From positions 1,426,001 to 1,490,000 of the forward strand of contig NIVC01000012.1 of NCBI GenBank assembly GCA_002269645.1: a stretch of DNA of 64,000 bases, read 5' to 3'. The stretch is from Macrostomum lignano (taxonomy: Eukaryota). Position 1 is the first letter of the stretch, and every line of letters starts with the position of its first letter. Below, piece after piece: positions 718-53,600 of the stretch. The notes beneath the pieces are model-generated. The model was not told the DNA's origin. It did no database searches and saw nothing but the letters and a program-made list of their open reading frames with translations. Made by a program: the position numbers and the translations under genes.

Positions 718-1066
718 GACCCTCAGATCCTCAGCTGCAGGGCCCGCCTCCCAGATCCTCAGTTGCTGGGCCAGCCTCCCAGATCCTCAGTTGCTGGGTC
801 AGCCTCCCAGATCCTCAGTTGCTGGGCCAGCCTCCCAGATTCTCAGTTGCTGGGCCAGCCTCCCAGATTCTCAGTTGCTGGGCCAGCCTCCCAGAGTGTC
901 AGTTGCAGGGCCTGCCTCCCAGATCCTCAGTTGCTGGGCCAGCCTCCCAGATCCTCAGTTGCTGGGCCAGCCTCCCAGATTCTCAGTTGCTGGGCCAGCC
1001 TCCCAGATTCTCAGTTGCTGGGCCAGCCTCCCAGATTCTCAGTTGCTGGGCCAGCCTTCCAGATCC
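718..1066 (+). repeat. 28-bp minisatellite (CCCAGATCCTCAGTTGCTGGGCCAGCCT)n, locus 1 of 3
   Basis: About 12 tandem units; the same unit occurs at 17484-18180 and, inverted, at 50818-52395. Confidence 0.97.
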
Positions 1067-1103
1067 TTAAAACGAGCGTTGCTCATTTAGAACTCGTTTT
1101 GGA

Positions 1104-1570
1104 GTCATAAGAGTCAGTCTATAGGGTCATAAGAGTCAGTCCAGGGTCATAAGACTCCAGTCTAGGCGTCATAAGAGTCATTCCAGGGTCAAGAAGAGAA
1201 AATAAAAAGAAAGGAGAGATAAAAGAGATAGAGAAAAGAGGAGAGAGAAATAGAAAGATAAGAGTCAGTCCAGGGGTCGTAAGAGTCAGTCCAGGGTCAT
1301 AAGAGTCAGTCCAGGGTCATAAGAGTCAGTCCAGGGTCATAAGAGTTAGTCCAGGGTCATAAGAGTTAGTCCAGGGTCATAAGAGTCAGTCCAGGGTCAT
1401 AAGAGTCAGTCCAGGGTCATAAGAGTCAGTCCAGGGTCATAAGAGTCAGTCCAGGGTCATAAGAGTCAGTCCAGGGTCATAAGAGTCAGTCCAGGGTCAT
1501 AAGAGTCAGTCCAGGGTCATAAGAGTCAGTCCAGGGTCATAAGAGTCAGTCCAGGGGTCATAAGAGTTAG
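1104..1570 (+). repeat. 20-bp minisatellite (GTCATAAGAGTCAGTCCAGG)n, interrupted by a purine tract at ~1190-1260
   Basis: Exact 20-bp period visible at 1281-1560. Confidence 0.97.
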
Positions 1571-2049
1571 CTTAGCGGTCAGAACTATAACACATTGGCA
1601 TATTGGATAATAATATATGTTTATTTCTCTTGTAGTCTGTTTTTAAGTTGCTGCGTCAGTTTGGGGTCACAAGGTCAATCGGGGTCAGAGAGTCAGACAG
1701 TCAACCCCTTCCCCAAACAATAAACTATTAAATATATTATCCATGCAATTTTGCACTACTCAAGACTTGTCTACCTTCTAGATTTAATCCGCTACCACAA
1801 AGCGCGCAAAAAAATGATTTGGCTAATTAATTGGCATTATAAATCATATCTATCAATTATGAATGCTCGTAACTGCTGCGTATTACGAGTATTTGAAGAA
1901 TAGAGAAGGGAGTTAAAGCTATGTGTAGCCTCACTCCCACTGACTCAGACTGGGCGGGTTGAAGGCTTTGGGTGGGCTTGGCCAAGGACGTCTTAAACAT
2001 GAAACTGGATTAGAGACTTTTGGCTGCAAATTTTTCTCAGTTTTGAGTG

Positions 2050-2645
2050 CATGAATGGGCGAATGAATGATTGAATGAATGAATGAGTGAATGAATGAAT
2101 AAATGAATGAATCAGTGAGTGAATTAATGAATGAATTAATGAATTAATGAATGAATGGATGAATGAATGAATGGATGAATGAATGGATGGATGAATGAAT
2201 GAATGAGTGAATGAATTAATGAATTAATGAATTAATGAATTAATAAATTAATGGATTAATGAATGAATGAATAAATGAATGAAGGAATGAATGAATAAAT
2301 GAATGAATGAGTGAGTGAATGAAAAAAGAATGAATAAATGAATGAAGGAATGAATGAGTGAGTGAGTGAATGAAGGAATAAATGAATGAATGAGTGAGTG
2401 AATGAATGAATGAATGAATGAATGAATGAATGAATGAATGGGTGAATGAATGAATGAATGAATAAATAAATGGATTAATGAGTGAGTGAATGAATGAATA
2501 AATGAACGAATGAGTGAAAGAATGAACATATGAATGTATGAATGAATGGATGAATGAATGAGTGAGTGAGTGAATGAATGAATGAATGAATGAATGAATG
2601 AATGAATGAATGAATGAATGAATGAATGAATGAATGAATGAATGA
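2050..2645 (+). repeat. (GAAT)n microsatellite, partly degenerate
   Basis: Directly visible; it explains the IHSF-repeat ORF 2248-2724. Confidence 0.97.
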
Positions 2646-3671
2646 GGAACAAAGGCGAGATTTGCCTATCCAAGTTCCAGTTAGAGCTCTCCATGGCCTG
2701 TCGCTGAGGTGGGGCTTTGCCCATCGCGTCTTCCTAAAGTATTAACACAATTGCCCTGAGAACGCAGTACAGTGCGTGTTGGCAATTATTGGGAAAAAAA
2801 TACAGCCAGTGGTCCTGAGATCCGCTCCCCCTTCCCCACTCCCCTCTTTCTGCTCTCTCCCTGTCTTCCCATTCTCCCCTACCCCGCCTGCCCCTCCCAG
2901 TTCCCCATTATTTCAACCTTTGTGTAAGGCTTTGAGTCATCCTCTTTCCCAAAAAGCCCTCTTCCCCTTCTAAGCTGTGAAACCTCTATCCCTGTGAATA
3001 GACGGGGCAGCAGTTGAGCATAGTGAGCATATAGTCTAGCTAAGCCGTGTCCCCAGAATTACTTTAATGTACAGTAAGTTAGATTGGGTTACTATTAGAA
3101 GCATTTTTTTACTCGTTCTCACATACCCGTTGTATAGGTTTTTTTAACCAGCTCAAAAAAAACACATGCGGAACTGCTTCAGACTCAAAATAGACAAAAT
3201 TTCTTAGCTTAGTATCAGCGACTTAATGTTGTAACTATAATTCATTGTGCTCCGCGTGTTGTGGCTCTGTATCTGTGGGGTGCAATGGCTTTTGTATGCA
3301 AACTTTACCGCATCCGACAGATCTGCACGCACCTGTCTTGTGACTTACTGATCTACAAATTCTGCTTTTAGCAAGCCTAGTCGTTCAAAACCAGCCGTTT
3401 TCAAAGCCGAAACGAAAAACTTCAGAGAAACTTTAAAAACACTTTACTTCTCAAAAGAAGGCACTGGATCCTTCACACGAATTAAAACTTTGATAACTTT
3501 ATTTTATAATTTTTCACTTGACTTGACAGCTTCTTTTAATTTCCGCTAAAGCCAAGAAGAGTAGGAAAATAGTCCCCATAAGCTATCAATATAAACTCCC
3601 GTTAAATGAAAATTATTAAATTAAATTATTATGAACCAAAGTATTCGTGAGTTTACACCGTATGCACACAA

Positions 3672-4600
<929 letters not shown>

Positions 4601-5005
4601 AAACAAACTGACTTGAACTCTAGTTTCTAAGCCTGGTATCTATCTATAGGCGTCCATGGCCAAGTTATATAGTTCATTTTTTTATAATGGTCTTTTTCTT
4701 CTTTTAGCAGAAGAAGAATTATTTCTACTTTTTCTCGCCGGGTCAAGGCAATTTTCAAGACCAGAGTGTGGTGGGTGGCGCTCGAGAGAGCAGTGCCGGA
4801 GTGAGAGTGCGTCCCCGCATGCTGGGCAATTATTAACTGTGCCCCCTGCCCTGTGCCTGGCGCACAATGGCCCTTAGCTAGCTAGTTAGAATTAATTTTA
4901 TATTGTCCATAAGATGTGCGATTTTTGGCTACCATAGATACTATATAACATAGCATAGATACTATATTTATATAGTATCTGTGTTGGCTGACATATATTT
5001 ATCGA

Positions 5006-6160
5006 ATTCTAGATATTACCCAATTCTAGATATTACCCAATTCTAGATATTACCCAATTCTTGATGTTACCCAATTCTAGATATTACCCAATTATATATA
5101 TTACCCAATTCTAGATATTACCCAATTCTAGATATTACCCAATTCTAGATATTACCCAATTCTTGATGTTACCCAATTCTAGATATTACCCAATTATATA
5201 TATTACCCAATTCTAGGTATTACCCAATTCTAGATATTACCCAATTCTAGATATTACCCAATTCTTGATGTTACCCAATTCTAGATATTACCCAATTCTA
5301 GATATTACCCAATTCTAGATATTACCCAATTCTATATATTACCCAATTCTTGATGTTACCCAATTCTAGATATTACCCAATTATATATATTACCCAATTC
5401 TAGATATTACCCAATTCTAGATATTACCCAATTCTAGATATTACCCAATACTAGATATTACCCAATTCTAGATATTACCCAATTCTAGATATTACCCAAT
5501 TCTAGATATTACCCAATTCTAGATATTACCCAATTCTAGATATTACCCAATTCTAGATATTACCCAATTCTAGATATTACCCAATTCTAGATATTACCCA
5601 ATTCTAGATATTACCCAATTCTAGATATTACCCAATTCTAGATATTACCCAATTCTAGATATTACCCAATTCTAGATATTACCCAATTCTTGATGTTACC
5701 CAATTCTAGATATTACCCAATTATATATATTACCCAATTCTAGATATTACCCAATTCTAGATATTACCCAATTCTAGATATTACCCAATTCTAGATATTA
5801 CCCGATTCTAGATATTACCCAATTCTAGATATTACCCAATTCTAGATATTACCCAATTCTATATATTACCCAATTCTTGATGTTACCCAATTCTAGATAT
5901 TACCCAATTATATATATTACCCAATTCTAGATATTACCCAATTCTAGATATTACCCAATTCTAGATATTACCCAATTCTAGATATTACCCAATTCTAGAT
6001 ATTACCCAATTCTAGATATTACCCAATTCTAGATATTACCCAATTCTAGATATTACCCAATACTAGATATTACCCAATTCTAGATATTACCCAATTCTAG
6101 ATATTACCCAATACTAGATATTACCCAATTCTAGATATTACCCAATTCTAGATATTACCC
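5006..6160 (+). repeat. 17-bp minisatellite (AATTCTAGATATTACCC)n
   Basis: About 68 units, with recurrent variants TTCTTGATGTT and TTATATATATT. Confidence 0.98.
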
Positions 6161-6702
6161 ATAAGCAAACGCATGGCCGCAGTAACCAGATGTATTGAAT
6201 TCACTTTCACTTCCATTCACTTTGGTGCTATATAAGAGAATCCTATATTTAGAATGCAATACTGCAGGTATTAGTAAGTGACAGTGGGTCAGGAAATGAA
6301 ATCTGACTGACTGACACAAGAATCTAGCGATCCGCATGACTTGGCATTAATAATTTTAAACCAAGTCTCATTTCTCTCATTTCGCTATACATGCATAGCG
6401 TAAAGATTTGCTGCTTTGAGAAAGTCATGAGGAACTTAGAATTTACGGACTGTCGCTAATTTTTCTGAGATTCTCCATTAGATTGCACCACTGTCTTCGA
6501 GCAGATAAAGTTGGCAGAGAGACTTATAAAAGTATCGTTTCACTTCAATGCATGTGGCGAGTGGCCTCAGCTGTATTTTGGAGCCGCGAAAGTGTAGCAT
6601 TTTATTCGAAACTCCTGTGCAGTGCGCAATTTTATCATTAGCAGCTCATCTCTGGCTTCAACTGCTGAGCTGCTCTTTGCTTTCTGCCTAATTTTAGCTG
6701 CT

Positions 6703-6930
6703 GTCTCTCCCTGTCTCTCTCCCTGTCTCTCTCCCTGTCTCTCCCTGTCTCTCCCAGTCTCTCCCTGTCTCTCTCCCTGTCTCTCCCTGTCTCTCCCTGT
6801 CTCTTCCAGTCTCTCTCCCTGTCTCTCCCTGTCTCTCTCCCTGTCTCTCCCTGTCTCTCCCTGTCTCTCCCTGTCTCTCCCTGTCTCTCCCTGTCTCTCC
6901 CTGTCTCTCCCTGTCTCTCCCTGTCTCTCC
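6703..6930 (+). repeat. 10/12-bp pyrimidine repeat (CCCTGTCTCT)n
   Basis: Directly visible. Confidence 0.95.
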
Positions 6931-7732
6931 TTGCCCCTCCTTTCCCTCGCACTTGGCATGCACTTGCAAGTTAAAAATTAAGCGCCATGTGTTCTTTATA
7001 CTTCAAATTTTGCTGCTTTCAAACATGGTCAGAAAAAATCAATACTTCTAAGTAGGAAGCGTGGCAGAGTTTTTGGCTCGTGTCGTTGTAAGCACCGAAT
7101 TTTATATCCTTGTCGGCAAAACTAAAAAAAATACTTGAAAGAATCGTGTCCCTGATTGCACTGAGCGGCATGCTTTGCCTTTTCTTTTTGTTTAGACAGG
7201 TGAAGTTGGTTCCGTGCCTATTTTTAGCTGTACAGCGGGCAGCAAGTATAAATTTTCCTATACGTGTAGCTTCAATACCGAACGGTCTGTTCACAGACCA
7301 CAATCTTTTATGACGTAATCTCTTCATATAATCCCTACCTGCCAGATGAATGCAAGCTCCCTGCTCGCTGCTTTCTGTGGCTAGGATGCATGGCCTGACT
7401 TTCATAGGTGGTGACTCAGACTCTCTTGTCTACCCCCAGTACATGAGGATTTCAGTAATTCTGTACCTGTCCGACCGCATAATGACAGTATCTGTATTCA
7501 GTGTTAGAGAATGACACTGAAACACAATAATCGATCATTCCATTCTTTCTAAATTTGATTTTTTGCGTGACAATGCATACGAAAAAAGGGAACTAATTAT
7601 GAGAGCACGTTAGTTTGCATAAAATCATAAAAAAGCTTAAATTTTATCTAAAATATTCGAATAACCTACTAAAAGTAGGCAAGCTTTGAAAATTGACACT
7701 ATTTAACTGGATTTTTTCTCGCCGCAATACAG

Positions 7733-9131
<1,399 letters not shown>

Positions 9132-9790
9132 GTTCTGTTTATGGATCATTGAAATGAGGATGTAATGCTTGAAAATTTATTGGAAATGCATTGACGCGAT
9201 GGAGTTTACATTTTCCTAGAAACGAACTTGTTTCCAAGAAAAACTGGAAACTTCCTATTTCGGTAAGGCTTGGATTGTGAAACATCAAAACGAGGCGTTT
9301 AAACAAATTTAGACGAATTTTTATTGAAGTGTTGCAATCTTCTATATGCATCTACATTCCTTGATGATTTCATTTATCAATAATATTTGAAAATTCAATG
9401 AAACTCAAAATGTGCAATGAATAAACAATTCAGCTACTCTACACATGCTCACTATACTCGTATTGTTACATATTCGTATCGTCGCTGTACATGTATTTTA
9501 ACCTGCTTATATGTGTCTATTTATTTACCTGTCATGTCACGTCTATCGCTCACTTGGCTGTCATTCAATTTTGATGGACTATATATAGCTATTAATTATA
9601 AATGTAATTATAATTCAATAGCAATTCCTTCGCGTAGGGTTTATTAGTAGCGAATGCAATAATACATAAATAAAACACACGTGTGTATGACTTTGCCGTC
9701 GTCTTCAACCTTTGCTTATCATCAATTTTGGTTAAAATTTAAAACATTCCGCTAATTTTTATGGCATAATTTCGATCCTGTACAATAGGC

Positions 9791-9920
9791 TCAGGGGTTG
9801 GCCCACACGGCTGTTAATTGCGCGGGCTGAGACTCCAATTTATGGCCCCAAAATTTGTGACTGCACTTAGAAATCGAGCCTTTGGCCGCTGGCACATCAG
9901 AGCGCACCGCGCTAGACCTC
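9791..9920 (-). mobile_element. tRNA-derived SINE, family B, partial copy
   Basis: Reverse complement GGTCTAGCGCGGTGCGCTCTGATGTGCCAGCGGCCAAAGGCTCGATTTC...GTGCAGTCAC matches 18573-18710. Confidence 0.75.
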
Positions 9921-12778: not shown

Positions 12779-12786
12779 GTCCGTGC

Positions 12787-13376
12787 TTAGGGCTTTATAG
12801 AGGGCGTTTTTAGTCGGCATGTGTGTAGAGGGAGAGCGTAGCCACTTGCGAACCGTGTGTTTGCTACCAAACATTTACTATGGAAATGCAACAACAAGTG
12901 CTGCTGCAGTGAATTCCGAGAATGTGTTATATACTGCATAGAGAGTGAAAGTTGTAACACTCAGAGATAATAGATGATAATAATAGGTTAAGAAGTTTTA
13001 CAGGTAAAACGTAATTAATTCTGCTAATTTTACTTGCTTGTCTGCCCCAAAAGTTTTTATCCTGAGGATGCTGTGCTGATGCTTTTACCTCTGGTTTGGA
13101 TGTAAAGTACAAAATAATATCTGCTCTTATAGTTACTGCAGTGTCGAAATGATAATATAGCCATCAGTTATTGGTCACTATTAATGATTCGCAATCCAAA
13201 TACGTTCTCACATTGATAGCGCTCTCTTGAGTCGAGTTAAAAATTCAATTAGCTACATACATAATGCATGTGTTTTTATCCTTTTTTATGTTGCTTCATT
13301 CACAGATTCATTTGGCCATATCGATTGACAATTTAGAATAAAAGTGTATTTTATATGAGACGTTTGGAATTTCCAC
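12787..13376 (+). repeat. 590-bp segment duplicated at 24902-25491
   Basis: Read side by side, the two copies differ at about five positions. This copy begins 9 nt after the PEF stop codon. Confidence 0.95.
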
Positions 13377-14232: not shown

Positions 14233-14679
14233 CAGGGGCGTCGCCATGGATTTTATGGTGGGGGACAAAGCCAAGAATTCAACATGTACATGTACATGAA
14301 TAAATTCCTACATTTCAATTATTTTGAGAATCGTGTTGTCAACCCTCATTTTGGCGCTGCAGGTAGGTACTCATTTTAGCGCCGCAGGCACTCATTTTGC
14401 CGCCGCAGGCATTACTTGTGTGGCGCCGCCGCAGGCATTACTTGTGGCGCCGCCGCAGGCATTACTTGAATGGCGCCGCAGGCACTCCTTTTGGCGCCCC
14501 AGGCATTACTTTTGGCGCCGCAGGCACTCATTTTGGCGCCCCAGGCACTCATTTTAGCGCCGTAAGCTCTATATTTTGGCGCCCTGAATAAAAACTATTG
14601 ATTTACCACAACGAGTCTGCACAAGGTGGGGTGGGGACAAGCATGGCATGTCCCCCCATCCCCGGTGGCGACGCGCTTG
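14233..14679. mobile_element. hAT-type MITE with internal 21-bp minisatellite
   Basis: TIR CAGGGGCGTCGCCA / CAAGCGCGTCGCCA (12/14); perfect 8-bp TSD GATACATT (14225-32, 14680-87); internal TTTTGGCGCCGCAGGCACTCA repeats. Confidence 0.9.
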
Positions 14680-16462
14680 GATACATTACATGCACCGACG
14701 TTCACCTATGTAGGGCGTCGTTATACGTTGTTGATGCAGTGTAAAGCACAGACGTCGCAGTGAAAACTATGTAATAATTTTACATTCACCGACTTCAGCC
14801 AAGTATAGTTAGCCGTCGATGTAAATCTAAAAGTAAAATTACTTACTTTTAGGGACGTAGATCGACGTCGAGAACGTCGGTCGTAGCTAAATCGATGGAC
14901 ACGTTGAGTTCATATAGCGAGTATTGTATACCTGGGAAACCGACGACATGTAACGAGAAAATATCACAGAGTTCATATGCTGCATATTACAGCTGTCTCA
15001 GTGTGATCGTTTAATTACATTGGCTTCCGATGACAAGTTACATGTGCAAGCTAGTATATGTACAATATGTAGAAGCATCAGGCAAACAGAGAGCATTACC
15101 AAAAACATGTCATAGTTAAGTTGTTTGTTGCTGGGTAATAATCGTACAGAAAATGTTGCTATTTAGGACAATCGAGTAGATTCACTTTGCATTTGTGTCA
15201 AGATTTTTTGCGAATTCGACAAAATGAGAGGAATTAAGCTTCAGCTGCTGGTTTAGCAGTGAAATTTACTGTATAAATAAAATTTATTCTCACCTGCCAG
15301 TAAATTTAAAATCACGTTACTTATGTTATTCTAAGGATCTCATGTCTTACATGTACATGTGCAAATTTAACCCAAATAAATAAATACAGTACATATATAG
15401 TTCCATGTAACTGTACAGGTACAACGTACATGTATGTACAAATTTATGCATGTGGGGTAGTTTAAGTTGAATTACGGAGCCTTGGGCCCGTTAAGGAAGC
15501 CCAGTGCTCCATTTAATCATACTTTGCATACTCAGAATCTACAACATTCTTATAGTTATACGCATGCGACAATTGAATAACATAGCCAGTTTGACATTCG
15601 ATGTATAGTTACGGCAAACTATGCATGATGCTATTATTAATTAGGCGTCCTTTTCACTAGTGTGAATTGGAATAGATGTCAAAGTATTATTTAGTAAAGC
15701 CACCTGTTACGCAACTAAAATCTAATAAAATTATGTGTTGAAAACGCCTGCTGAAACCTGCTGGAAAGTTAAATTGTTATAACGTTGTAATAAACAAGCT
15801 GAACACGTGTTCACTTTCAGTTTAGTATGAAAACATAATTTATTCACAAATGGATTGTATGGATGGATTAGTTATTGGACGCTAACTGTCTGTGTCTGTA
15901 ACTATGAGAAAGATAGGCCTAGCTTTATCAGCTTTTAGCTAAGCCCCAGTTTTAGCTTTGACTTTGTTTTCTTGCCCTATAGGCAGCTAAACATTTAGCA
16001 ATGTAGCTACAAGGACGACTTAAGTCAGTGACTTAAGTCAGTGACAGTGACTTAAGCCATCTGTAGCTATTGAATGAATCGCTATCGCTAGCCTTTGTTT
16101 TTTCATAGCCTGTTCTTCCATCTAAAAGCATCTATTTATAATTAGGCCTTAGACAAACTCCTAATTGTTATGCTTGATCGCTTTTTATATTTAGAATTTT
16201 TTTATATTTATTATTTATTTCGCTACAATGTTCTTATTACACTTAGGGCATACTGAATATATTTTACTTCAATTGAAAATAAAAATGTATCATTTGATCA
16301 CCATGATGCAGGCAATTTATGCCACATGCTGCCATCTAGGTCTATAAAATTGTTATATATAAAAAAAATAACTTCCTAAATAAAAATTTTAATTGAAAAA
16401 CTAAATGATGAATAAAATTTTGGAGATATTTCTAATATTCCTTGCTTTGATGCTAGTTTTTT

Positions 16463-16770
16463 TAATAATAATAGGCCTAATGTAGTAATTGATTACACCT
16501 GTCCCAATTGGGCCAGATTTACAACCAACAACTCAGCTGCAGCTATTGTGTGGCACATCTGAAGGTTGTAGCTGGCTATTTAGTCCAAGGACTAGGCTAT
16601 TACCAGGCATAGGCATAGCTAATGCTGGCACCTATTTTATAGCTGGATAAACTAAAGTAATACAGAGTTAAGTGTATTACTCAAAGACTTAAATTATTTT
16701 GAGTGGATTGAGAATCAAACTTCCAACCTTCAAGTTGTGAGTTCAATGCTCTTACCATTAGGCTATAACC
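16463..16770 (-). mobile_element. CORE-type tRNA-derived SINE, heavily C>T/G>A mutated copy
   Basis: Minus strand: A-box-like TAGCCTAATGG, degenerate B box AGTTTGATTCT, CORE-like ...TCCAGCTATAAAATAGGTGCCAGCATTAGC, and a tail matching positions 1-118. Confidence 0.75.
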
Positions 16771-17006: not shown

Positions 17007-18319
17007 ATGAGCAATAGCTTAAAACATGTAAGTACCCTTTCTATTGAATCAATTATCTTTTACCATAATTCAATGGAAGAGTAGGTTCATATGGCACACA
17101 TTTTAGATGTGCCTATGGCTTAACATTTTTTGTTATGCTGGTATATACTATGTCGTACTATGAGTAGCCATTACTGTTTTATGCTCAATATGCATCCATT
17201 TTCAGTTTATTTTAAAGGCAGAAACTCGCCAGCTTTACCGGTCGCTGCTGCGAACTGCAGGCAAAGTGGCCGATTCAAACCAGCGAAGGGAGCTGCGTCA
17301 GTGGATTCGAGCTGAGTTCGAGCTGCACCGAGCCGACACTGACCTTGTGAGCAGCTCTCCCAGTAGCCGAGGCTGATTCTTGGCTTGGGCTGCAAGATGA
17401 ACTTTTGGATAGGCTAGCCTAGGTTTTCTGTTGCTGAGCCACAGACACAGCTCACAGGTTCTCAGCTTCTGAGCCACCATCGCCCTCCCAGATCCCCAGT
17501 TGCTGGATCAGCCTCCCAGATCCCCAGTTGCTGGATCAGCCTCCCAGTGTGTCAGTTGCTGTGCCAGCCTCCCAGTGTGTCAGTTGCTGTGCCAGCCTCC
17601 CAGATCCGCAGTTGCCGTGTCAGCCTCCCAGATCCCCAGTTGCCCTGCCAGCCTCTCACATCCCCAGTTGCTGGGCCAGCCTCCCAAATCCTCAGTTGCT
17701 GTGTCAGCCTCCCAGATCCTTAGTTGCTGGGCCAGCCTCCCAGATCTTCAGTTGCTGGGCTAGCCTCCCAGATCCCCAGTTGCTGGGCCAGCCTCCCAGT
17801 CCCAGATCCTCAATTGCTGGGCCAGCCTCCCAGAGTGTCAGTTACTGGGCCAGCCTCCCAGAGTGTCAGTTACTGGGCCAGCCTCCCAGAGTGTCAGTTA
17901 CTGGGCCAGCCTCCCAGAGTGTCAGTTGCTGGGCCAGCCTCCCAGATCCCCAGTTGCTGGGCCAGCCTCCCAGATCCCCAGTTGCTGGGCCAGCCTCCCA
18001 GATCCCCAGTTGCTGGGCCAGCCTCCCAGATCCCCAGTTGCTGGGCCAGCCTCCCAGATTCTCAGTTGCTGGGCCAGCCTCCCAGATTCTCAGTTGCTGG
18101 GCCAGCCTCCCAGTTGCTGGGCCAGCCTCCCAGATCTTCAGTTGCTGGGCCAGCCTCCCAGATCCTCAGTTGCTGGGCCATCTAAAACTCTCATACGTGT
18201 TTATATAAGCATTAAAACCTGTCCAATTTAAACTGTTTCAGGACTCTATCAAAGCGGCATTAGCAAATGGAAAGCAGGCAAAATCAAAATTGGAACAGAT
18301 GATATCGTCGTCTACATAA
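17007..18319 (+). CDS. LYRM2: LYR motif-containing protein 2 (mitochondrial, 79 aa)
   Basis: Exons 17007-17027, 17206-17346 and 18242-18319, all phase 0 with canonical sites, give MSNSLKHFILKAETRQLYRSLLRTAGKVADSNQRRELRQWIRAEFELHRADTDLDSIKAALANGKQAKSKLEQMISSST*. It has the LYR motif, the W..EF motif and the LYRM2-like LK.F...Q.L/LYR spacing. Confidence 0.85.
17484..18180 (+). repeat. 28-bp minisatellite, locus 2 (LYRM2 intron 2)
   Basis: Same unit as 718-1066; more divergent at its 5' end. Confidence 0.97.
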
Positions 18320-35327: not shown

Positions 35328-35968
35328 CAGGGGCGTAGCCAGGAATTTTGATTGGGGGGGGGGCCCGTGAGTTAGGGGGCGCCAGCTTCTTATAGGGGGG
35401 GGCGCCAGTTTCTTTTAGAGGGGGGGCGCCAGTTTCTTTTAGGGGGCGCCAGTTTCTTATAGGAGGCGCCAGTTTCTTTTAGGAGGGGGGGCGCCAGTTT
35501 CTTTTAGGGGGGGGGCGCCAGTTTCTTTTAGGGGGCGCCAGTTTCTTATAGGGGGCGCCAGTTTCTTTTAGGAGGGGGGGCGCCAGTTTCTTTTACCGGG
35601 GGGGGGCGCTAGTTTCTTTTAGAGGGGGGCGCCAGTTTCTTTTAGGGGGAGCGCCAGTTTCTTTTAGGGGGGCGCCAGTTTCTTTTAGGGGGCGCCAGTT
35701 TCTTATAGGGGGCGCCAGTTTCTTTTAGGAGGGGGGGCGCCAGTTTCTTTTAGGGGGGGGGGGCGCCAGTTTCTTTTAGGGGGGCGCCAGTTTCTTATAG
35801 GGGGCGCCAGTTTCTTTTAGGAGGGGGGGCGCCAGTTTCTTTTACCGGGGGGGGGCGCTAGTTTCTTTTAGGGGGGCGCCAGTTTCTTTTAGGGGGGGCG
35901 CCAAGGCCAGAGTTGGTGATTAAGGGGGGGCCACGGCCCCCCTTGCCCCCCCTCTGGCTACGCCCCTG
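35328..35968. mobile_element. hAT-type MITE with an internal G-run minisatellite
   Basis: Perfect 15-bp TIR CAGGGGCGTAGCCAG / CTGGCTACGCCCCTG; perfect TSD GATATGAT; internal (G)nCGCCAGTTTCTTTTAG repeats. Confidence 0.93.
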
Positions 35969-37635: not shown

Positions 37636-38014
37636 ATACAAGCTATGTTTATTAAGGCAAACATATTAATAGGCCTAGTTCAATATATTATATTTGGTGT
37701 AAGACCAAGATGGCCACACACCAAGATGGCCACAGCTGGGGTGGGGGTCACGGAAAATGACAGCTGGTTTACTATTGGATAGCTTTGGGTGGGGAGATGT
37801 GGGGTTGCAATGGGGGGGTTTAGACAGGCAGTCAAAAATGGTCACGAGTCTTAATTTCCTACTTATAGTAAGGCCCTAAGAGGTATAAACGTATTTTGCA
37901 TTAAACAAATCTCTTCTTCATATAAAATCTGGTGTAGCTTTTTTCCATTTCTCTTATTGGTTGAGATAAATACATTTTCTCAGTCCTATAATCTTTAATG
38001 GCATGACACGGCCT

Positions 38015-43392: not shown

Positions 43393-43441
<49 letters not shown>

Positions 43442-43494: not shown

Positions 43495-43560
<66 letters not shown>

Positions 43561-44384: not shown

Positions 44385-45044
44385 AGGCTGATGGTCTGGG
44401 TCTGGGATTAGTCTCCTCATTGTTCCCGATCTCATCCGTATCTCACTCACCCTGTCTTCTCATCCATGTTTCTCACCCTTATCTCACCCATATCTCATCG
44501 ATCTCATCCCTATCTTACCCCATCTCACCCCCATCCACCGATATCTCATCCCTATCTAACCTTTATCTCACCCATCTAACCCCTATCTCATTTTCTTACC
44601 TTCATCTCACCCTTACCCATCCCTATCTCACGCATACATGTAGCTCGCTCCTATCTCACCCTTTTACTTCAACCATATCTCACACTATCTCATCTACATT
44701 TCACCCCTTTTTTCGTCCTTATCTCAATTCTTATCTCACGATAAGTCTCACAAATGCCGCTATTAGTCTCTAATTATTGATAGGTATCAGCCACTAACCT
44801 CCTGAGCACTCTTCTCACTTTTATTCCTTCATAAATGTATTTTGTTCCGAGAAACCATTACCTAGAAACCGGAGAAAATATTTTGCATCTTCGCAACCTA
44901 ATTTTGAACTATACATGTAACTTCTGCCTGTTTTCTGCAACTTGCGCACTGCATTTTTGTGTATATCAAAATAATAAACTGTTTTTCTATTCAATTAATG
45001 TCTTTATCGGTGTTTGTTAACGCTTCAAATTTGTGTTTTGTGTC

Positions 45045-45965
45045 AATCTACCCCGAGAATCGCCCTTAATCTACCCTGAGAATCGCCATCAATCTACCCT
45101 GAGATTTGCCCTCAATCTACCCTTAGATTCGCCCTCAATCTACCCCGAGAATCGCCCTCAATCTACCCCGAGAATCGCCCTTAATCTACCCTTGAGAATC
45201 GCCCTCAATCTACCCTGAGAATCGCCCTCAATCTACCCTGAGATCTGAGAATCGCCATCAATCTACCCTGAGATTTGCCCTCAATCTACCCCGAGAATCG
45301 CCTCAATCTACCCTGAGAATCGCCCTCAATCTACCCTGAGATCTGAGAATCGCCATCAATCTACCCTGAGATTTGCCCTCAATCTACCCTGAGAATCGCC
45401 CTCAATCTACCCCGAGAATCGCCCTTAATCTACCCTGAGAATCGCCCTCAATCTACCCTGAGATCTGAGAATCGCCATCAATCTACCCTGAGATTTGTCC
45501 TGAATCTACCCTGAGATTCGCCCTCAATCTACCCCGAGAATCGTCCTCAATCTACCCTGAGATTTGTCCTCAATCTACCCTGAGATTCGCCCTCAATCTA
45601 CCCCGAGAATCGCCCTCAATCTACCCCGAGAATCGCCCTTAATCTACCCTTGAGAATCGCCCTCAATCTACCCTGAGAATCGCCCTCAATCTACCCTTGA
45701 GAACCGCCCTCAATCTACCCTGAGAATCGCCCTTAATCTACTCTTAAGAACCGCCCTCAATCTACCCTGAGAATCGCCCTCAGTCCACCCTTGAGAATCG
45801 CCCTCAATCTACCCTGAGATTCGCCCTCAATCTACCCCAAGAATCGCCCTCGATCTACCCTAAGAATCGCCCTCAATCTACCCCAAGAATCGCCCTCGAT
45901 CTACCCTGAGAATCGCCCTCAATCTACCCCAAGAATCGCCCTCGACCTACCCTGAGATTCGCCCT
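45045..45965 (+). repeat. 23-bp minisatellite (CAATCTACCCTGAGAATCGCCCT)n, intergenic
   Basis: About 40 units; its reverse complement is related to the array at 61318-61908. Confidence 0.95.
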
Positions 45966-46057: not shown

Positions 46058-49000
46058 ATGGCATCAACTTCTCATGAAAAACGCGCTGTCGGAAGTACAA
46101 AACGACAAAGTGCATCAGCTAAGCAGCAGTCCATCGGAGTCAAACGTGCCCGTTTAAATATTCGTAACAATTTCTTTTCTCGGTCAAAGGCGCTGCCAAT
46201 TATTAGAACTAACATTGTTCGCCTAGATGAGCCCAGCTTAGCCACTCAAGTGGTGGCTATTGATTGCGAATTTGTTGGCACCGGGCCAAGAGGCAGCGTT
46301 AGCGCTCTGGGCAGAGCTAGCGTGCTCAACGAGAGAGGAGATGTAAGACTTTTTTTGAATGGGTTAATGCCTATATTTTATAGTACTTTGGTTAGTTAAT
46401 GGCACAGGTGATAACAGGTGTGTAGATGAACAGAAGGTAGATTGATCCTTATGGTTATGAAATAGATCCTTTGTCGTTTTTGGTAGACCATGGATTGGGG
46501 ATAGATAGTTATGGTAGATCATGGATTGGGGATAGATAGTTATGGTAGATCATGGATTGGGGATAGATAGTTATGGTAGATCATGGATTGGGGATAGATA
46601 GTTATGGTAGATCATGGATTGGGGATAGATAGTTATGGTAGATCATGGATTGGGGATAGATAGTTATGGTAGATCATGGATTGGGGTAGATAGTTATGGT
46701 AGATCATGGATTGGGGATAGATAGTTATGGTAGATCATGGATTGGGGTAGATAGTTATGGTAGATCATGGATTGGGGATAGATAGTTATGGTAGATCATG
46801 GATTGGGGATAGATAGTTATGGTAGATCATGGATTGGGGATAGATAGTTATGGTAGATCATGGATTGGGGATAGATAGTTATGGTAGATCATGGATTGGG
46901 GATAGATAGTTATGGTAGATCATGGATTGGGGATAGATAGTTATGGTAGATCATGGATTGGGGTAGATAGTTATGGTAGATCATGGATTGGGGATAGATA
47001 GTTATGGTAGATCATGGATTGGGGGTAGATAGTTATGGTAAATCAGGGTTGGGGTAGACTGTAGATCATGGATTGGGGTAGACTGTAGATCATGGATTGG
47101 GGTAGACTGTAGATCATGGATTGGGGTAGACTGTAGATCATGGATTGGGGTAGACTGTAGATCATGGATTGGGGTAGACTGTAGATCATGGATTGGGGTA
47201 GACTGTAGATCATGGATTGGGGTAGACTGTAGATCATGGATTGGGGTAGACTGTAGATCATGGATTGGGGTAGACGGTAGATCATGGATTGGGGTAGACG
47301 GTAGATCATGGATTGGGGTAGACTGTAGATCATGGATTGGGGTAGACTGTAGATCATGGATTGGGGTAGACGGTAGATAATGGATTGGGGTAGACTGTAG
47401 ATCATGGATTGGGGTAGATAAGGTATGGTAGCCGGTGCAGAAGCTCATTAATCTGTCTCCCAATCCACCTGTCAGGTGCTGCTAGATGTGATGTGCCTGC
47501 CAGACGAGCCAGTAACGGATTACCGAACCAGATGGAGCGGCATTCGAGCTGCCGACCTCTCACGCGGCCTTCCATTCGACGCCGTTCAGGATCTGGTCCG
47601 TCGGGCTGTACGGGGTCGAGTTTTAGTTGGTCACGCATTGCATAACGATTTGAGAGTGCTGCGGTTGCACCATCCGGAGGGTCTGGTTCGGGACACTAGC
47701 AAGTGTGTTCTGCTGCAGGTGAGCCTTCTGGACTGCCCGAGTGTTCTCATCCCTTTCTCACCCATATCACACCCTTATCTCCCGTCTCACCCCTATCTCA
47801 CTCTCATCTTACCTATACCTCACAGTCCCTGTTTCACCCCTATCTCACACCATCTCACCTAATCTCCCTCCTATCTCGCACCTGTCTCACACCTATCCCA
47901 CTCTCACCCCTATCTTACCTATATCTCACCCTTGTCTCACCCCTATCTCCCCCTATCTCACCTAATCTCACTCCTGTCTCGCACCTGTCTCACACCTATC
48001 TCACTCTCACCCCTACTTACCTAAGTCTCACCCCTACTTACCTAAGTCTCACCCCTGTCTCACCCCTATCTCACCCCTGTCTCACCCCTATCTCACCCCT
48101 GTCTCACCCCTATCTCACCCCTGTCTCACCCCTATCTCACCCCTGTCTCACCCCTATCTCACCCCTGTCTCACCCCTATCTCACCCCTATCTCACCCCTG
48201 TCTCAACTTATGCACCATCCGTTATCTCACGCCCAGAGCCTTACAGTTTTCAAGACAACAGTTATCGCCCAATCACCCCGATACCCCACCCACCCCACGC
48301 CAAGGCCAAGGCTGGCATGCCACCCCAGGGCAAGCGGCCGGCCAGTCTGCGCAGTCTCTCCCTCGCTCTGCTCAATCTGAGAATCCAGCAGCGCGAGCAC
48401 GACTCAGTTGAAGACGCCGACGCTTGCCTGAAATTGTATCGTCTGGTTGCCGAGGAGTGGGAGTCTCAGCTGGCCGTGCGAGCTCCCGAGCTGGGCAAGG
48501 AGTCTGACGATGAGTCTGATCAGGTGAGCAGGCTAGATATTAGTGCCACAGGCTAGATTTCAGCGCCACAGGCTAGATTTTAGCGCAAACAGACTAGATT
48601 TCAGCGCTACTGGCTAGATTTTGACGCCACAGGCTCGAGTTTAGTGCCACAGACTAGATTTTAGCGCCACAGACTAGATTTTAGCGCCACAGGCCAGATT
48701 TTGGCGCCACAGACTAGATTTTAGTGCCACAGGCTCCATTTTAGCGCCACAGACTAGATTTTAGCGCCACAGACTTGATTTTAGCGCAAACAGACTAGAT
48801 TTTAGTACCACTGGCTAGATTTCAGCGCCACAAGCTAGATTTTAGCGTCACAGACTAGATTTTAGTGCCACAGACTGGATTTTAGCGCCACAGACTGGAT
48901 TTTAGTGCCACAGACTGGATTTTAGCGCCACAGACTGGATTTTAGCGCCACAGACTGGTTTTTAGCGCCACAGACTGGATTTTAGCGCCACAGACTGGAT

Positions 49001-50105
49001 TTTAGTGCCACAGACTGGATTTTAGCGCCACAGACTGGATTTTAGCGCCACAGACTGGATTTTAGCGCCACAGACTGGATTTTAGTGCCACAGACTGGAT
49101 TTTAGCGCCACAGACTGGATTTTAGCGCCACAGACTGGATTTTAGTGCCACAGACTGGATTTTAGCGCCACAGACTGGATTTTAGCGCCACAGACTGGAT
49201 TTTAGTGCCACAGACTGGATTTTAGTGCCACAGACTGGATTTTAGCGCCACAGGCTAGATTTTAGCGCCACAGGCTAGATATTAGCGCCACAGGCTAGAT
49301 ATTAGCGCCACAGGCTAGATATTAGCGCCACAGGCTAGATATTAGCGCCACAGACAAGATATTAGCGCCACAGACTAGATTTTAGTGCCACAGACTGGAT
49401 TTTAGTGCCACAGACTGGATTTTAGTGCCACAGACTGGATTTTAGTGCCACAGACTGGATTTTAGTACCACTGGCTAGATTTAAGCGCCACAAGCTAGAT
49501 TTTAGCGTCACAGACTGGATTTTAGTGCCACAGACTGGATTTTAGTGCCACAGGCTAGATATTAGCGCCACAGACTAGATATTAGCGCCACAGGCTAGAT
49601 ATTAGCGCCACAGGCTAGATATTAGCGCCACAGGCTAGATATTAGCGCCACAGGCTAGATTTTAGCGCCACAGGCTAGATTTTAGCGCAAACAGACTAGA
49701 TTTTAGTACCACTGGCTAGATTTCAGCGCCACAAGCTAGATTTTAGCGTCACAGACTAGATTTTAGTGCCACCGACTAGATATTAGCGCCACAGGCTAGA
49801 TATTAGCGCCACAGACTAGATTTTAGCGCCACAGGCTAGATATTAGCGCCACAGGCTAGATATTAGCGCCACAGGCAGGATTTTAGCGCCAATCGCTCTA
49901 AAACCATTTTACGCAGGCAAGCAATGGCGACAAAGCAGCTGCATCAGTTAAAGGGCGCCAGAGAGCACGCCTACATGAATTATCCTACTCAAATCCCGAA
50001 TCAACAGCCAAGTTGACAGCCAGACGACAAGTGAGGCCTGGCTTTGTTGGCACCTGGCAGACTGGAGATGCCGACAATTTGCTAGTCGATGACAAATACT
50101 GGTGA
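46058..50105 (+). CDS. DEDDh 3'-5' exonuclease, AEN/ISG20L2/REXO4 family (~311 aa)
   Basis: Exons 46058-46342, 47476-47718, ~48305-48523 and 49917-50105. Motifs AIDCEFVG (ExoI), VGHALHND (ExoII) and HDSVEDA (ExoIII); [10 protein letters not shown] and the C-terminal DDKYW resemble AEN/ISG20L2. The exon 3 acceptor is approximate. Confidence 0.88.
46487..47420 (+). repeat. Compound 31-bp then 24-bp minisatellite in exonuclease intron 1
   Basis: (AGATCATGGATTGGGGATAGATAGTTATGGT)n to ~47040, then (AGATCATGGATTGGGGTAGACTGT)n. Confidence 0.97.
47750..48210 (+). repeat. 11/22-bp C-rich repeat (CTCACCCCTATCTCACCCCTGT)n in exonuclease intron 2
   Basis: Directly visible; a degenerate relative follows the ERCC1 stop (~44415-44750). 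Confidence 0.9.
48528..49890 (+). repeat. 20-bp minisatellite (TTTTAGCGCCACAGACTGGA)n in exonuclease intron 3
   Basis: About 68 units, starting within ~10 nt of the donor. Confidence 0.98.
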
Positions 50106-50681
50106 CTGGCGCGCTTAATACTGCGCCTACTATAAGCAGTCTTTAGAGAGTTATTTTCCTATTAAAAATAAATAGACTGGATTAAAAAAACTACAAGCCA
50201 ACCAGACAAATTCTGTACAAAAAACTGTTTTAGAATAAAACCCCTCTGTGATCGTTTATTATTTTTGTTGTAATAAAGTGTTTTTTAATTTTATTTTTTT
50301 CTCCCTTATGTTGATGCACGTTTACACTACTTATAAGTAGTTTCATTATATAGACGGATAGGTATGTGGATGAAGCTAAGGAGCCAAGGCGAATAAGAAT
50401 CCTATTTATGGTATTATAATTGATAGGCAAATCTTCGTTTGCCTGGCAACCGCCCTTCCCAATTAACGTTTGTGCCAAATTGTTTGTTTTCTTGGGAAAA
50501 TATTTCTAACTCAAAAGAAATCTGTAAATAGCTGACATGACTCTATATTTAGTAGTCATTATTATTATATAGATTGCCCATTTTTTCTGAGCTTCCCAAT
50601 TGGATGTAACTTGGAATTAGATTAATATATAAATAGAACTACGGTAGAGCATTTTGTAAACACATCCTGCAAAGACTGGAC

Positions 50682-53600
50682 ATGGACTACTACAGCAGAG
50701 CCAACACTTGGTCGGAGAAGAAGTCTTCCGAATTTCAATTGCTTAAGCGTGAGACTGGTCACAGGTGCGTGCTTTGCTTTTGAGTATTGTCGCTTATTGC
50801 TTGACGATGAAGGGTGATGGCCCAGCAACTGAGGATCTGGGAGGCTGGCCCAGCAACTGAGGATCTGGGAGGCTGGCCCAGCAACCGACACTCTGGGAGG
50901 CTGGCCCAGCAACCGACACTCTGGGAGGCTGGCCCAGCAACTGACACTCTGGGAGGCTGGCCCAGCAACTAAGGATCTGGGAGGCTGGCCCAGCAACTAA
51001 GGATCTGGGAGGCTGGCCCAGCAACCGACACTCTGGGAGGCTGGCCCAGCAACCGACACTCTGGGAGGCTGGCCCAGCAACCGACACTCTGGGAGGCTGG
51101 CCCAGCAACTGAAACTCTGGGAGGCTGGCCCAGCAACTAAGGATCTGGGAGGCTGGCCCAGCAACTAAGGATCTGGGAGGCTGGCCCAGCAACTGAGGAT
51201 CTGGGAGGCTGGCCCAGCAACCGACACTCTGGGAGGCTGGCCCAGCAACTGACACTCTGGGAGGCTAGCCCAGCAACTAAGGATCTGGGAGGCTGGCCCA
51301 GCAACTAAGGATCTGGGAGGCTGGCTCAGTAACTGAGGATCTGGGAGACTGGCCCAGCAACTGATTATCTGGGAGGCTGGCACAGCAACTGGGGATCTGG
51401 GAGGCTGGCCCAGCAACTGGGGATCTGGGAGGCTGGCCCAGCAACTAAGGATCTGGGAGGCTGGCCCAGCAACCGACACTCTGGGAGGCTGGCCCAGCAA
51501 CCGACACTCTGGGAGGCTGGCCCAGCAACCGACACTCTGGGAGGCTGGCCCAGCAACTGACACTCTGGGAGGCTGGCCCAGCAACTAAGGATCTGGGAGG
51601 CTGGCCCAGCAACTAAGGATCTGGGAGGCTGGCCCAGCAACCGACACTCTGGGAGGCTGGCCCAGCAACCGACACTCTGGGAGGCTGGCCCAGCAACTGA
51701 CACTCTGGGAGGCTGGCCCAGCAACTAAGGATCTGGGAGGCTGGCCCAGCAACTAAGGATCTGGGAGGCTGGCCCAGCAACCGACACTCTGGGAGGCTGG
51801 CCCAGCAACCGACACTCTGGGAGGCTGGCCCAGCAACCGACACTCTGGGAGGCTGGCCCAGCAACTGACACTCTGGGAGGCTGGCCCAGCAACTAAGGAT
51901 CTGGGAGGCTGGCCCAGCAACTAAGGATCTGGGAGGCTGGCCCAGCAACCGACACTCTGGGAGGCTGGCCCAGCAACCGACACTCTGGGAGGCTGGCCCA
52001 GCAACTGACACTCTGGGAGGCTGGCCCAGCAACTAAGGATCTGGGAGGCTGGCCCAGCAACTAAGGATCTGGGAGGCTGGCTCAGTAACTGAGGATCTGG
52101 GAGACTGGCCCAGCAACTGGGGATCTGGGAGGCTGGCACAGCAACTGGGGATCTGGGAGGCTGGCCCAGCAACTGGGGATCTGGGAGGCTGGCCCAGTAA
52201 CTGACACTCTGGGAGGCTGGCCCATCAACTGAGGATCTGGGAGGCTGGCCCATCAACTGAGGATCTAGGAGGCTGGCCCAGCAACTGAGGATCTGAGAGG
52301 CTGGCCCAGCAACTGAGGATCTGGGAGGCTGGCCCAGCAACTGAGGATCTGAGAGGCTGGCCCAGCAACTAAGGAACTGGGAGGCTGGCCCAGCCAAAGT
52401 ACTTTAAGTTGTTTAGCCTACAAAGATCCCTCACCAGTGCCCACCTCCCCCACTGACCTCTGCCCAGAATATTCGTGAACCGCAGTCTGCAGCTGGACCG
52501 CATCAAGTTCTACGGATTCGACATGGACTACACCCTTGCCCAGTACAAATCACCCAGCTACGAATCTGCAGCCTTCCGTTTAATGCTCAACCGCCTGGTT
52601 GACATTGGCTACCCCAGCGAGATACTCAAATTCCAATACGATCACACATTCCCTATCAGAGGCTTGTGGTTTGACAAAGATCGCGGCTGCCTACTTAAAG
52701 TGGATTCGTTTGGCAATTTATTAAGCTGCTTATTTGGCCTAACAGTAGTGCCGTCCGCTGAGCTTCACTCCTGGTACGAGAATAAGTTTGTACAGCTGAG
52801 CGACAGGTTTTATGTGTACGATACTCTGTTTAATTTGCCGGAGATCTACTGCATGGCCTCCATCATTGAGTTCTTCAAGGCCCTGCCGCAGGCTTCGGTG
52901 GAACGGAACGGCATTGTGTACAAGGTCTGTTTGAGGGCACTATGATTCTTTCTGCTTTCCCCGTTCTCACCCTATCTCACCGTTATTGTGTGCTGTCCCT
53001 CCAATCCCCCAGGAGCTCAACATCTCGTACCGCTCCCTATTCAACGACGTTCGAGGCGCGGCGGACGCAATTCACAACGACGACTCGTTGAAACGTCTCA
53101 CCGTTGAACAGATCGACGAGTTTGTTCACACCGACTCGGACCTGTTGGATCTACTGGAGCAGTTGAAGGCTACGGGTGCGAAGGTGTTTCTACTGACTAA
53201 TTCCGAGTATTGGTACACTGACGCTCTCATGTCCTACCTGTTGGGCCCCAACTGGGTGGGCATGTTCAACTACGTATTAGTTAGCGCCTGCAAGCCGAAG
53301 TTCTTCGCCGAGGGTAGCCTACTGCGCGTGGTTGATCGCTCTAGCGGCAAGCTCAAGCTGGGTACTCACATGGGCCCGCTGCAGTCTGGCGTGGTCTATT
53401 CAGGTGGTGAGTGGCTTCAATTGAAACAAAGTTTAACTTTATTAAGTCTATATAGAAGTCCGCTTTGAAAAGTATTTTGCGCTACATATCGGCAATGTAT
53501 GTGCATTTTTAATACAGCTATATTGAGGGTATCTATTTTTATGACGTATGGGTAGGTGAATTAAGCTGATTTGAGTTTCAGTGTTTCAATTTGGAAATTA

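Follow-up and report, generated by a model that had tools for sequence, protein, structure and literature searches.

Satellite DNAs are known to occur in short, highly dispersed arrays, some of them associated with transposons and others standing alone (PMC10048060), and published work provides precedent for satellites spreading without a carrier, through interlocus conversion, microhomology-mediated repair or extrachromosomal circular DNA (eccDNA) (PMC7403614; PMC11610590). Transposon-free spread of tandem repeats through gene-rich DNA has already been described in flies and beetles, and what we report here is not a new category. Within a stretch of 64,000 nucleotides of the Macrostomum lignano genome (assembly GCA_002269645.1, contig NIVC01000012.1, positions 1,426,001 to 1,490,000 of the forward strand), referred to throughout as the window, a 28-bp unit forms three tandem arrays, A1, A2 and A3, numbered along the window, which constitute one dispersed minisatellite (short-array satellite) family of this species. 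Their pattern matches that of short, highly dispersed satellite arrays, the closest studied examples being Rsp-like/1.688 of Drosophila and the Cast satellites of Tribolium. Hypervariable minisatellites of the Jeffreys type have a core of 10-15 bp in common and are thought to arise independently around that core. A literature search found nothing on minisatellite families in Macrostomum.

At none of the three loci or their homeologs did we find a terminal inverted repeat (TIR), a target-site duplication (TSD) or a common flank, and two routes of minisatellite dispersal appear to be represented within 64 kb: hAT-type miniature inverted-repeat transposable elements (MITEs), one of them with a clean empty site, and carrier-free arrays. 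Most loci of M. lignano exist in three homeologous versions (PMC10733133), and having three copies of each locus provides a built-in comparison for dating array events.

Kinship among the three arrays

Tandem Repeats Finder places the unit, CCTCCCAGATCCTCAGTTGCTGGGCCAG, in tandem at three sites (Table 1). A scan of the window for the full unit with up to three mismatches returned 66 occurrences, all 66 of them within A1-A3, with 0.00 expected from 100 shuffles. A first-pass annotation had reported a single 28-bp unit at three unlinked loci and in both orientations; the unit, the three loci and the two orientations are borne out by both searches, but the loci are physically linked, since A1 to A3 span 52 kb of a single contig. 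The coordinates and orientations that it gave were correct overall, except that A1 begins at about 724 and not at 718 and that the 5' edge of A2 is fuzzy.

The arrays are not independent of each other, because they have compound variants in common and because the last unit of A2 is identical to that of A3. We compared the arrays through unit-by-unit variant maps and through counts of shared non-consensus 20-mers. The three-substitution variant AGTGTC is common to A1, A2 and A3, and ATTCTC to A1 and A2, while A2 and A3 have in common ATCCCC, ATCCTT, GCTGTGCC and the double variant AGTGTC+TTACTGGG; an ordered block, AGTGTC.TTACTGGG followed by ATCCCC units, is likewise shared. A2 and A3 have 93 distinct non-consensus 20-mers in common, a number similar to the 80-90 for A3 and its own homeologs, and A1 of the window has 31-36 in common with A2. 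The terminal unit of both A2 and A3 is CCTCCCAGATCCTCAGTTGCTGGGCCA, followed by TC, so that both arrays end ...CAGTTGCTGGGCCATC, and past ...GCTGGGCCATC their similarity falls to zero at once (flanks TAAAACTC versus ACCCTTCA). A1, A2 and A3 descend from one multi-unit array, and an independent origin of the three, which we rejected on the strength of the compound variants, is excluded; the earlier argument that such a 28-mer could not arise three times is upheld by these variants and by the terminal unit, as is the observation that two arrays end in the same register, which applies to A2 and A3, whose flanks diverge directly afterwards. Such sharing calls for seeds that were already multi-unit blocks or for later exchange of sequence among the arrays.

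The edges of the arrays differ in character (a slash marks an array edge or junction here and in Table 1). Both edges are sharp in A1, which ends ...CCTTCCAGATCCT/TAAAAC in a register different from that of A2 and A3, and in A3, which begins GCTGGGCCAG and ends GCTGGGCCA/TC/ACCC. The 3' end of A2 reads ...GCTGGGCCA/TC/TAAAAC. Its 5' edge is the only fuzzy one in the family and consists of two degenerate proto-units that match the 28-mer at 18/28 and 20/28 positions when shifted out of register; their sequence is identical in two homeologs (L005 and L009, introduced below). These proto-units would be the oldest part of the family and possibly its birthplace. A2 is also the richest in variants of the three arrays (87% matches), and A3 is mostly a higher-order repeat of 5-6 units (ATCCTT twice, AGTGTCAG, then AGTGTCGG two to three times).

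Positional stability and turnover in homeologous copies

Homeologs were retrieved by exact look-up of hand-spliced proteins and then through the contigs of cluster members, which gave seven loci of ~19-22 kb each that partly overlap: L003, L004, L010 and L011 cover the region ERCC1-REXO4-NT5C2-GCN1, and L005, L008 and L009 the region LIM-PEF1-LYRM2. A further locus, L002, is the window's own copy (40682-64000, 100% identical over 23,319 bp), and L006 and L007 assign the remaining parts of the window to that contig as well, NIVC01000012.1. Unique sequence of the homeologs is 94.1-97.3% identical to that of the window, and L003 and L004 are 98.35% identical to each other. A1, A2 and A3 lie at identical sites with identical junctions in the homeologs (Table 1), and neither gain nor loss of a 28-mer array was seen in the seven loci. 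Since all three arrays keep their sites and junctions, their dispersal predates the homeolog split, and A1-A3 show no current mobility on the timescale sampled.

Within these fixed positions the arrays turn over. Copy numbers vary between homeologs (56/27/53 for A3, 25/28 for A2 and 12/10 for A1), and the edge units are conserved while the interiors differ. The higher-order repeat built on AGTGTCGG is found only in the A3 of the window, and A1 of L008 is composed only of CAGCTG-type units, arranged as a two-unit higher-order repeat, with a single non-consensus 20-mer in common with A1 of the window. We note that A3 of the window contains an A2-type block that is missing from A3 of L003 and L004; such A2-like units, which also occur in A1 of the window, may have come from conversion between arrays or from the sorting of ancestral variants. 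In L009 (~20121 onward), A2 breaks off some 8 units in, past CCTCCCAA, where unrelated sequence beginning ACAGTGTTGCTACAGGCTGCGTTTTT... takes over, and the locus ends before the far junction; the interrupting sequence is probably a transposon inserted into the array.

This behaviour extends to other arrays of the region. In the parts of the window from 1 to 28 kb and from 40 to 64 kb almost every array has a positional counterpart in the homeologs, with copy numbers that differ up to about eight-fold: L008 has 9 copies of a 17-mer that is present 68 times in the window (5005-6161), and a 23-mer at 45043-45965 occupies 923 bp in the window versus 331 bp in L003 (within a 363-bp gap). Most intronic minisatellites of M. 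lignano appear to be long-lived and positionally fixed, with copy numbers and internal variants that change quickly. Tandem repeats make up 32% of this gene-dense window (46 arrays with a period of at least 9), and simple and tandem repeats make up 15% of the M. lignano genome (PMC5730564).

Table 1. Arrays, host introns and transposable elements of the window and of its homeologous loci (positions are those of the window unless a homeologous locus is named; matches are from Tandem Repeats Finder)
Feature	Position	Strand	Size or copies	Remarks
A1	724-1067	+	12.3 copies	94% matches
A2	17484-18180	+	25 copies	87% matches
A3	50818-52394	-	56.3 copies	92% matches
Degenerate proto-units	17417-17483	+	two, 33-34 nt	5' edge of A2
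A1 in L008	886-1173		10.3 units	same ...AGATCCT/TAAAACGAGCG 3' junction
A2 in L005	10475-11249		27.9 units	GCTGGGCTATC/TAAAAC, same junctions
A2 in L009			first ~8 units	then foreign sequence
A3 in L003			27.3 units	...CTTTG/GCTGGaCCAG and GCTGGGCCATC/ACCCTTC
A3 in L004			53.3 units	junctions as in L003
A3 in L010/L011			present	junctions as in L003
MITE a, hAT-like	14233-14679	+		TIRs CAGGGGCGTCGCCA / TGGCGACGCGCTTG; perfect 8-bp TSD GATACATT
MITE b, second copy of the MITE a family	22460-23196	+		3' TIR no longer recognisable
MITE c, hAT-like	35328-35968	+		perfect 14-bp TIR CAGGGGCGTAGCCA; 8-bp TSD GATATGAT
LYRM2 exons	17007-17027, 17206-17346, 18242-18319	+		spliced model equals NCBI protein PAA94337.1 exactly
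LYRM2 intron 2, host of A2	17347-18241	+	895 nt	
NT5C2 intron 1, host of A3	50765-52467	+	1703 nt	protein P0124 reads ...KRETGHR/IFVNRS
29-bp minisatellite array	54703-56457	+	60 units	last intron of NT5C2, in the middle of a (CTGT)n tract

Search for a carrier and routes of dispersal

The flanks of A1, A2 and A3 have nothing adjacent in common (blastn with word size 7 and E of at most 10; masked self-BLAST), and the same searches found no non-repeat head or tail common to the array copies; the sole match between flank regions, of 83 bp, pairs 17-97 with 16486-16568, at 627 bp from A1 and 916 bp from A2. Inverted repeats flank none of the three arrays, no TSD is present at A1-A3, no direct repeat of at least 6 bp was found outside the arrays, and no solo or partial 28-mer unit was found in ~200 kb (the window and related loci). 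A systematic scan of the 24 larger arrays of the window, for a TIR of at least 12 bp together with a TSD of at least 6 bp within 250 bp, returned exactly two elements, at 14233-14679 and 35328-35968, and nothing at A1-A3. A hAT-type carrier for the 28-mer arrays was rejected, because A1-A3 lack TIR and TSD although the same scan detects the controls. That the flanks are unrelated and without TIR or TSD, as had been noted by eye in the first-pass annotation, is confirmed by blastn, by self-BLAST, by the inverted- and direct-repeat searches and by the combined scan, and alignment of the junctions gives a fixed end register for A2 and A3 but not for A1, the adjoining flanks being unshared.

The two elements recovered by the scan are hAT-like MITEs and serve, together with a second copy of the MITE a family, as positive controls. 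The three copies have the TIR CAGGGGCGT(C/A)GCCA, and their interiors are 20-21-bp minisatellites with a GGCGCC core whose units differ: a 21-bp minisatellite in MITE a (CTCATTTTGGCGCCGCAGGCA) and a 20-21-bp minisatellite in MITE c (GGGGGCGCCAGTTTCTTATAG). The 5' heads (~110 bp) and 3' tails (~80 bp) of MITEs a and b align at 77-78% identity, and MITE b is also present in L005. MITE a is also present in L008 and L009 and, since it is found in homeologs, is no younger than the 28-mer arrays. The strongest argument against a carrier of this kind is that a comparable one around the 28-mer arrays would still be visible, because MITE a, although at least as old, retains its TIRs and a perfect TSD. 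MITE c is missing from L010, which has a clean empty site, ...GGTGGATATGATAGAAAC..., with a single copy of the TSD (L010 1421-1428); because of this empty site MITE c is a post-split insertion, and transposon-borne movement of a minisatellite has taken place after the homeolog split. The absence of a carrier is no general rule here, as other minisatellites of the window travel inside hAT-type MITEs.

Our tentative preference is for a carrier-free process in which segments of an array were copied, with DNA as the template, from one locus to another nearby, and the resulting arrays then turned over in place. The 28-mer family would have arisen or first grown in the LYRM2 intron, with A2 closest to the source; A2 is taken as the source because it is the sole array with a degenerate edge and has the widest variant set. 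Breaks in short introns nearby might then have been filled with multi-unit pieces copied, as bare DNA, from an A2-like array, which would have given A1 16 kb upstream and, inverted, A3 33 kb downstream. The route would be ectopic DNA-templated repair (synthesis-dependent strand annealing, template switching or templated insertion of the polymerase-theta type), without a transposon, and the copied tract would have ended within 2 nt of the array edge, since the similarity of A2 and A3 falls to zero after GCTGGGCCATC. Copying would have been complete by the time the region's three homeologous copies diverged; the arrays would afterwards have stayed fixed in place while slippage and unequal exchange turned over their interiors, giving rise to higher-order repeats, local variant sweeps and copy numbers up to about twofold apart. 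Both orientations and the varying 5' registers are as expected for repair copying. A bias towards nearby sites on the same chromosome is suggested by the clustering of three arrays in 52 kb, set against one other gene model among 5.8 billion proteins and a 25.6-kb locus without the unit (see below), and by the local recurrence of three other carrier-free families, and a second family, the 29-mer array, which is carrier-free, differs by presence and absence between homeologs and lies in a fragile (CTGT)n tract, lends support. The first-pass proposal that the array itself disperses is plausible and survives the controlled comparison with the MITEs; it falls short of proof, and the spread is ancient and not ongoing.

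Several observations weigh against templated copying. None of the retrieved homeologs showed an empty site for a 28-mer array, and insertion itself was not observed. The common end of A2 and A3 fits an element with a defined 3' terminus equally well, and TAAAAC stands directly after the ends of both A1 and A2 (chance ~1e-3, uncorrected). As dispersal took place before the homeolog split, perhaps well before, short carrier ends could have decayed, and MITE c proves that minisatellites have been dispersed by transposons in the window, which makes a carrier more likely a priori. The case for clustering draws on samples that are small and on a protein search that depends on annotation. In each of A1-A3 the same stretch of 9-12 nt of the unit stands at both ends (P ~0.02 for random ends), which fits slippage from a short seed better than the reintegration of circles. 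A tree of the form (window,(two sister copies)) cannot polarise exchange between arrays, which leaves that evidence ambiguous. Single strands of the unit show no unusual structure (DNA folding z = -1.3 and +0.4), and hairpin-driven instability was rejected on these z-scores.

Alternatively, the arrays may belong to a non-autonomous transposon, of which they would form the tandem-repeat portion and whose non-repeat ends would at these loci be very short, truncated or decayed, an explanation that we regard as somewhat unlikely and for which the candidates are a Helitron/Helentron-like element, a 5'-truncated retroposon or short interspersed element (SINE) with a repeat tail, and a hAT-type MITE. 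Helitrons or MITEs are reported to carry the majority of the short arrays scattered through the genomes of oysters and many other species (PMC10048060), three hAT-like MITE copies in the window itself bear minisatellites, one of them with a clean empty site, and the arrays are older than the homeolog split; yet neither the three loci nor their homeologs have a TIR, TSD or common flank, and MITE a, of the same minimum age or more, retains such features. A2 and A3 share a 3' end and differ in their 5' starts, which is the classic 3'-anchored, 5'-truncated pattern of a retroposon, but the 3' end of A1 is a different one, and the similarity of A2 and A3 stops within 2 nt, leaving no room for a 3' terminal structure. 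The AAAA in the TAAAAC that follows both A1 and A2 could be the relic of a tail, although these 4 nt are all that the search for a retroposon tail found, with nothing after A3 and no TSD. The lack of a TSD is compatible with a Helitron, whose 5' end could be truncated, but the Helitron/Helentron hallmarks are missing: the 3' ends, ...GGGCCATC in A2 and A3 and ...AGATCCT in A1, are not CTRR, and no common subterminal hairpin was found. The absence of solo units and of partial element copies from ~200 kb also speaks against any such element. It is improbable that extrachromosomal circles, excised by exchange within an array and possibly amplified by rolling-circle replication, were reintegrated at breaks in other introns. 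Circles would insert without a carrier and in either orientation, satellite eccDNA and this route are documented or proposed in Drosophila and Tribolium (PMC7403614; PMC11610590), and the near-integral length of the 29-mer array (60 units minus 1 nt) nearly matches the partial-repeat signature that circles predict. The first and last partial units of the 28-mer arrays, however, do not add up to one monomer, which counts against this route as put forward in the first-pass annotation: those of A3 come to 10 + 27 nt (n x 28 + 9), and the excess is ~9 nt in A1 and ~12 nt in A2. Circles also carry no flank, so that the TC at the ends of A2 and A3 would need to be a common unit variant, and they give no reason for clustering on one chromosome segment.

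Parallel growth in place, in which an ancient dispersed seed of ~1.3 units (for example a fragment of an old transposon) expanded independently at each site with later exchange, seems to us more improbable still. Minisatellites can grow by slippage from a seed bounded by a short direct repeat, and the 9-12 nt common to both ends of each array would be the footprint of that process; A2 shows degenerate proto-units, and turnover in place is evident in the arrays. Nevertheless, parallel growth would not be expected to leave compound variants and ordered blocks (AGTGTC.TTACTGGG then ATCCCC) in common and would need extensive, unproven conversion, and the flanks hold no trace of the postulated old element. 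We give very little credence to the remaining two possibilities, RNA-mediated dispersal, in which reverse-transcribed intron RNA was inserted elsewhere, and an assembly artefact. A1 and A2 are sense-oriented in transcribed introns, but A3 is antisense to its host gene, poly(A) and TSD are absent, and A1 has only the TAAAAC hexamer in common with the flank of A2. The retrotransposed intron RNA suggested in the first-pass annotation is unsupported, as A3 has at most 2 nt of the intron flank of A2; we rejected this route because no intron flank was carried over, and the junctions effectively refute it. Although the genome is hard to assemble (PMC5730564), an artefact was rejected because five further contigs, each assembled independently, have the same junctions but differ in copy number and variants.

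If the preferred reading, templated copying, is extended beyond this family, M. lignano might have a carrier-free, near-site-biased array-copying process, namely templated repair at fragile short introns and microsatellites, that operates alongside hAT-MITE transport and is a main reason for the ~15% of the genome and 32% of the window that are tandem repeat. We consider this extension unlikely. If it is true, the three homeologous subgenomes would be natural replicates for the rates of array seeding, growth and loss.

Host genes, neighbouring repeats and described systems

A1 lies inside the annotated range of an uncharacterised gene of 1161 aa on the forward strand, with a LIM-domain exon on the reverse strand 260 bp away. 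A2 is in sense orientation in LYRM2 intron 2, where the array and its degenerate edge occupy 765 of the 895 nt and leave ~130 nt without array, and A3 is antisense to NT5C2, occupying 1577 of the 1703 nt of its intron 1 (126 nt are left without array) with its closer edge 53 nt downstream of the splice donor. Both intron assignments of the first-pass annotation are correct, the one because the spliced LYRM2 model equals PAA94337.1 and the other because P0124 confirms NT5C2 intron 1. The LYRM2 model is also identical to PAA54408.1 and contains the Pfam domain Complex1_LYR (PF05347); NT5C2 belongs to Pfam PF05761, and the exons around A3 are 100% and 98.6% identical to an M. lignano NT5C2-like protein.

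The 28-mer is free of stop codons in all three forward frames, so that the arrays read as long open reading frames. A translated array used as query against 5.8 billion proteins matched one other gene model, P0121 (M. lignano, ARL3-like, UniProt A0A1I8J1R5), whose C-terminus is a translated 28-mer array of the variant ATGCTC. The ARL part of P0121 has no match in the window and, because this protein carries an array, a fourth 28-mer locus is implied. The array-derived C-terminus is an annotation artefact, and annotators should be aware that open reading frames of arrays are read into gene models in this way. Exact-pattern scans of metagenome, viral and prokaryote collections with a conserved 24-mer of the unit gave 0 matches, a full-text literature search for the unit sequence returned only an unrelated primer, and a chimeric protein query of seven poorly conserved peptides from the window gave no match. 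Another locus, of 25.6 kb, contains no 28-mer array.

The 29-mer array (1.75 kb) is missing from L003 and L004, which have only the microsatellite at that place (L003 11472-11545, L004 11402-11703). It lacks a TIR. All three copies of the region carry, in a GCN1 intron 8.8 kb further downstream, an older array of this family that has variants in common with it (L002 24490-25395). A gain in the window lineage and a loss in the sister lineage are equally parsimonious. The possibility that the microsatellite was duplicated as a long TSD at this site was rejected, since the microsatellite of L004 is already complex. Three other carrier-free families recur locally in the window, within 3-16 kb. Two related 23-mers, ~83% alike, are inverted and 15 kb apart (45043-45965, reverse strand, and 61195-61906, forward strand); the 11-mer TCTCACCCCTA occurs twice, 3 kb apart (44477-44630 and 47745-48205). 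A 21-mer with the CATTTTGGCGCC core in common is found at an unrelated locus (L001 22142-22590).

The region also contains repeats of other kinds. The sister homeologs carry a 7.6-kb element (L005 ~1781-9423; L008 from ~15552 to the end of the locus, on the same contig as L005), of which L009 15534-18866 is an internally deleted version of 3.3 kb; it has a TIR of ~24 bp (GGCGCATGACCAAGACCGCCACAC) containing a tandem 16-mer and an 8-bp TSD, TTTCTAAT, and is missing from the window, where the empty site is at 16429-16436. A 16-mer related to that of its TIR, ACCAAGATGGCCACAC, is present in 1.9 copies at 37704-37734 of the window. A segment of 593 bp is duplicated at 99% identity 12 kb apart (12784-13376 and 24899-25491), and its second copy is bracketed by 142-bp direct repeats that are 97% identical (24757-24898 and 25535-25676); it looks like a small element of the long-terminal-repeat type, or with other terminal repeats, plus a partial copy. 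Short dispersed repeats of 76-80% identity pair 18573-18705 with 9795-9918 (inverted), 16617-16729 with 62436-62548 and 17-97 with 16486-16568. The first of these pairs looks tRNA-derived (SINE-like), although ARAGORN calls no tRNA in it, and none of the three adjoins a 28-mer array.

The 28-mer arrays resemble the Jeffreys-type families in their G+C-rich units of tens of bp, in their intronic or intergenic position and in the variability of copy number and variants. Unlike those families, they have the whole 28-bp unit, compound variants and a terminal unit in common, which points to descent by copying. The Helitron/Helentron satellites of Crassostrea gigas and the tandem-repeat MITEs of bivalves (PMC10048060) are scattered as short arrays, as are the arrays of the window. 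The 20-21-bp minisatellites with a GGCGCC core are internal to hAT-like MITEs in the manner of such tandem-repeat-carrying transposons, whereas the 28-mer arrays are without every one of their terminal features, though these features are detectable in neighbours of similar age.

The Rsp-like/1.688 satellites on the X chromosome of the Drosophila simulans clade (PMC7403614) offer a close parallel: as in the window, short arrays lie at gene-rich loci between unrelated flanks and without a transposon, and unequal exchange enlarges them in place, with higher-order repeats developing. The Drosophila arrays, however, are recent and species-specific, with empty sites and microhomology at the junctions, whereas the 28-mer family predates the homeolog split. 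They also enter pre-existing arrays of another satellite, while the hosts of the 28-mer are short introns, and their units are ~160-360 bp long as against 28 bp; the 29-mer array within (CTGT)n is the closer analogue in the window. The satellites Cast1-Cast9 of Tribolium castaneum (PMC11610590) are abundant in gene-rich euchromatin, most of them without a transposon and one with. Cast monomers are longer, and the Cast satellites show recent bursts and exchange between chromosomes, whereas the arrays described here show positional stability and, as sampled, local clustering. For Tribolium, transposition and eccDNA insertion have been proposed side by side, and the window likewise contains arrays borne by hAT-type MITEs next to arrays that are carrier-free.

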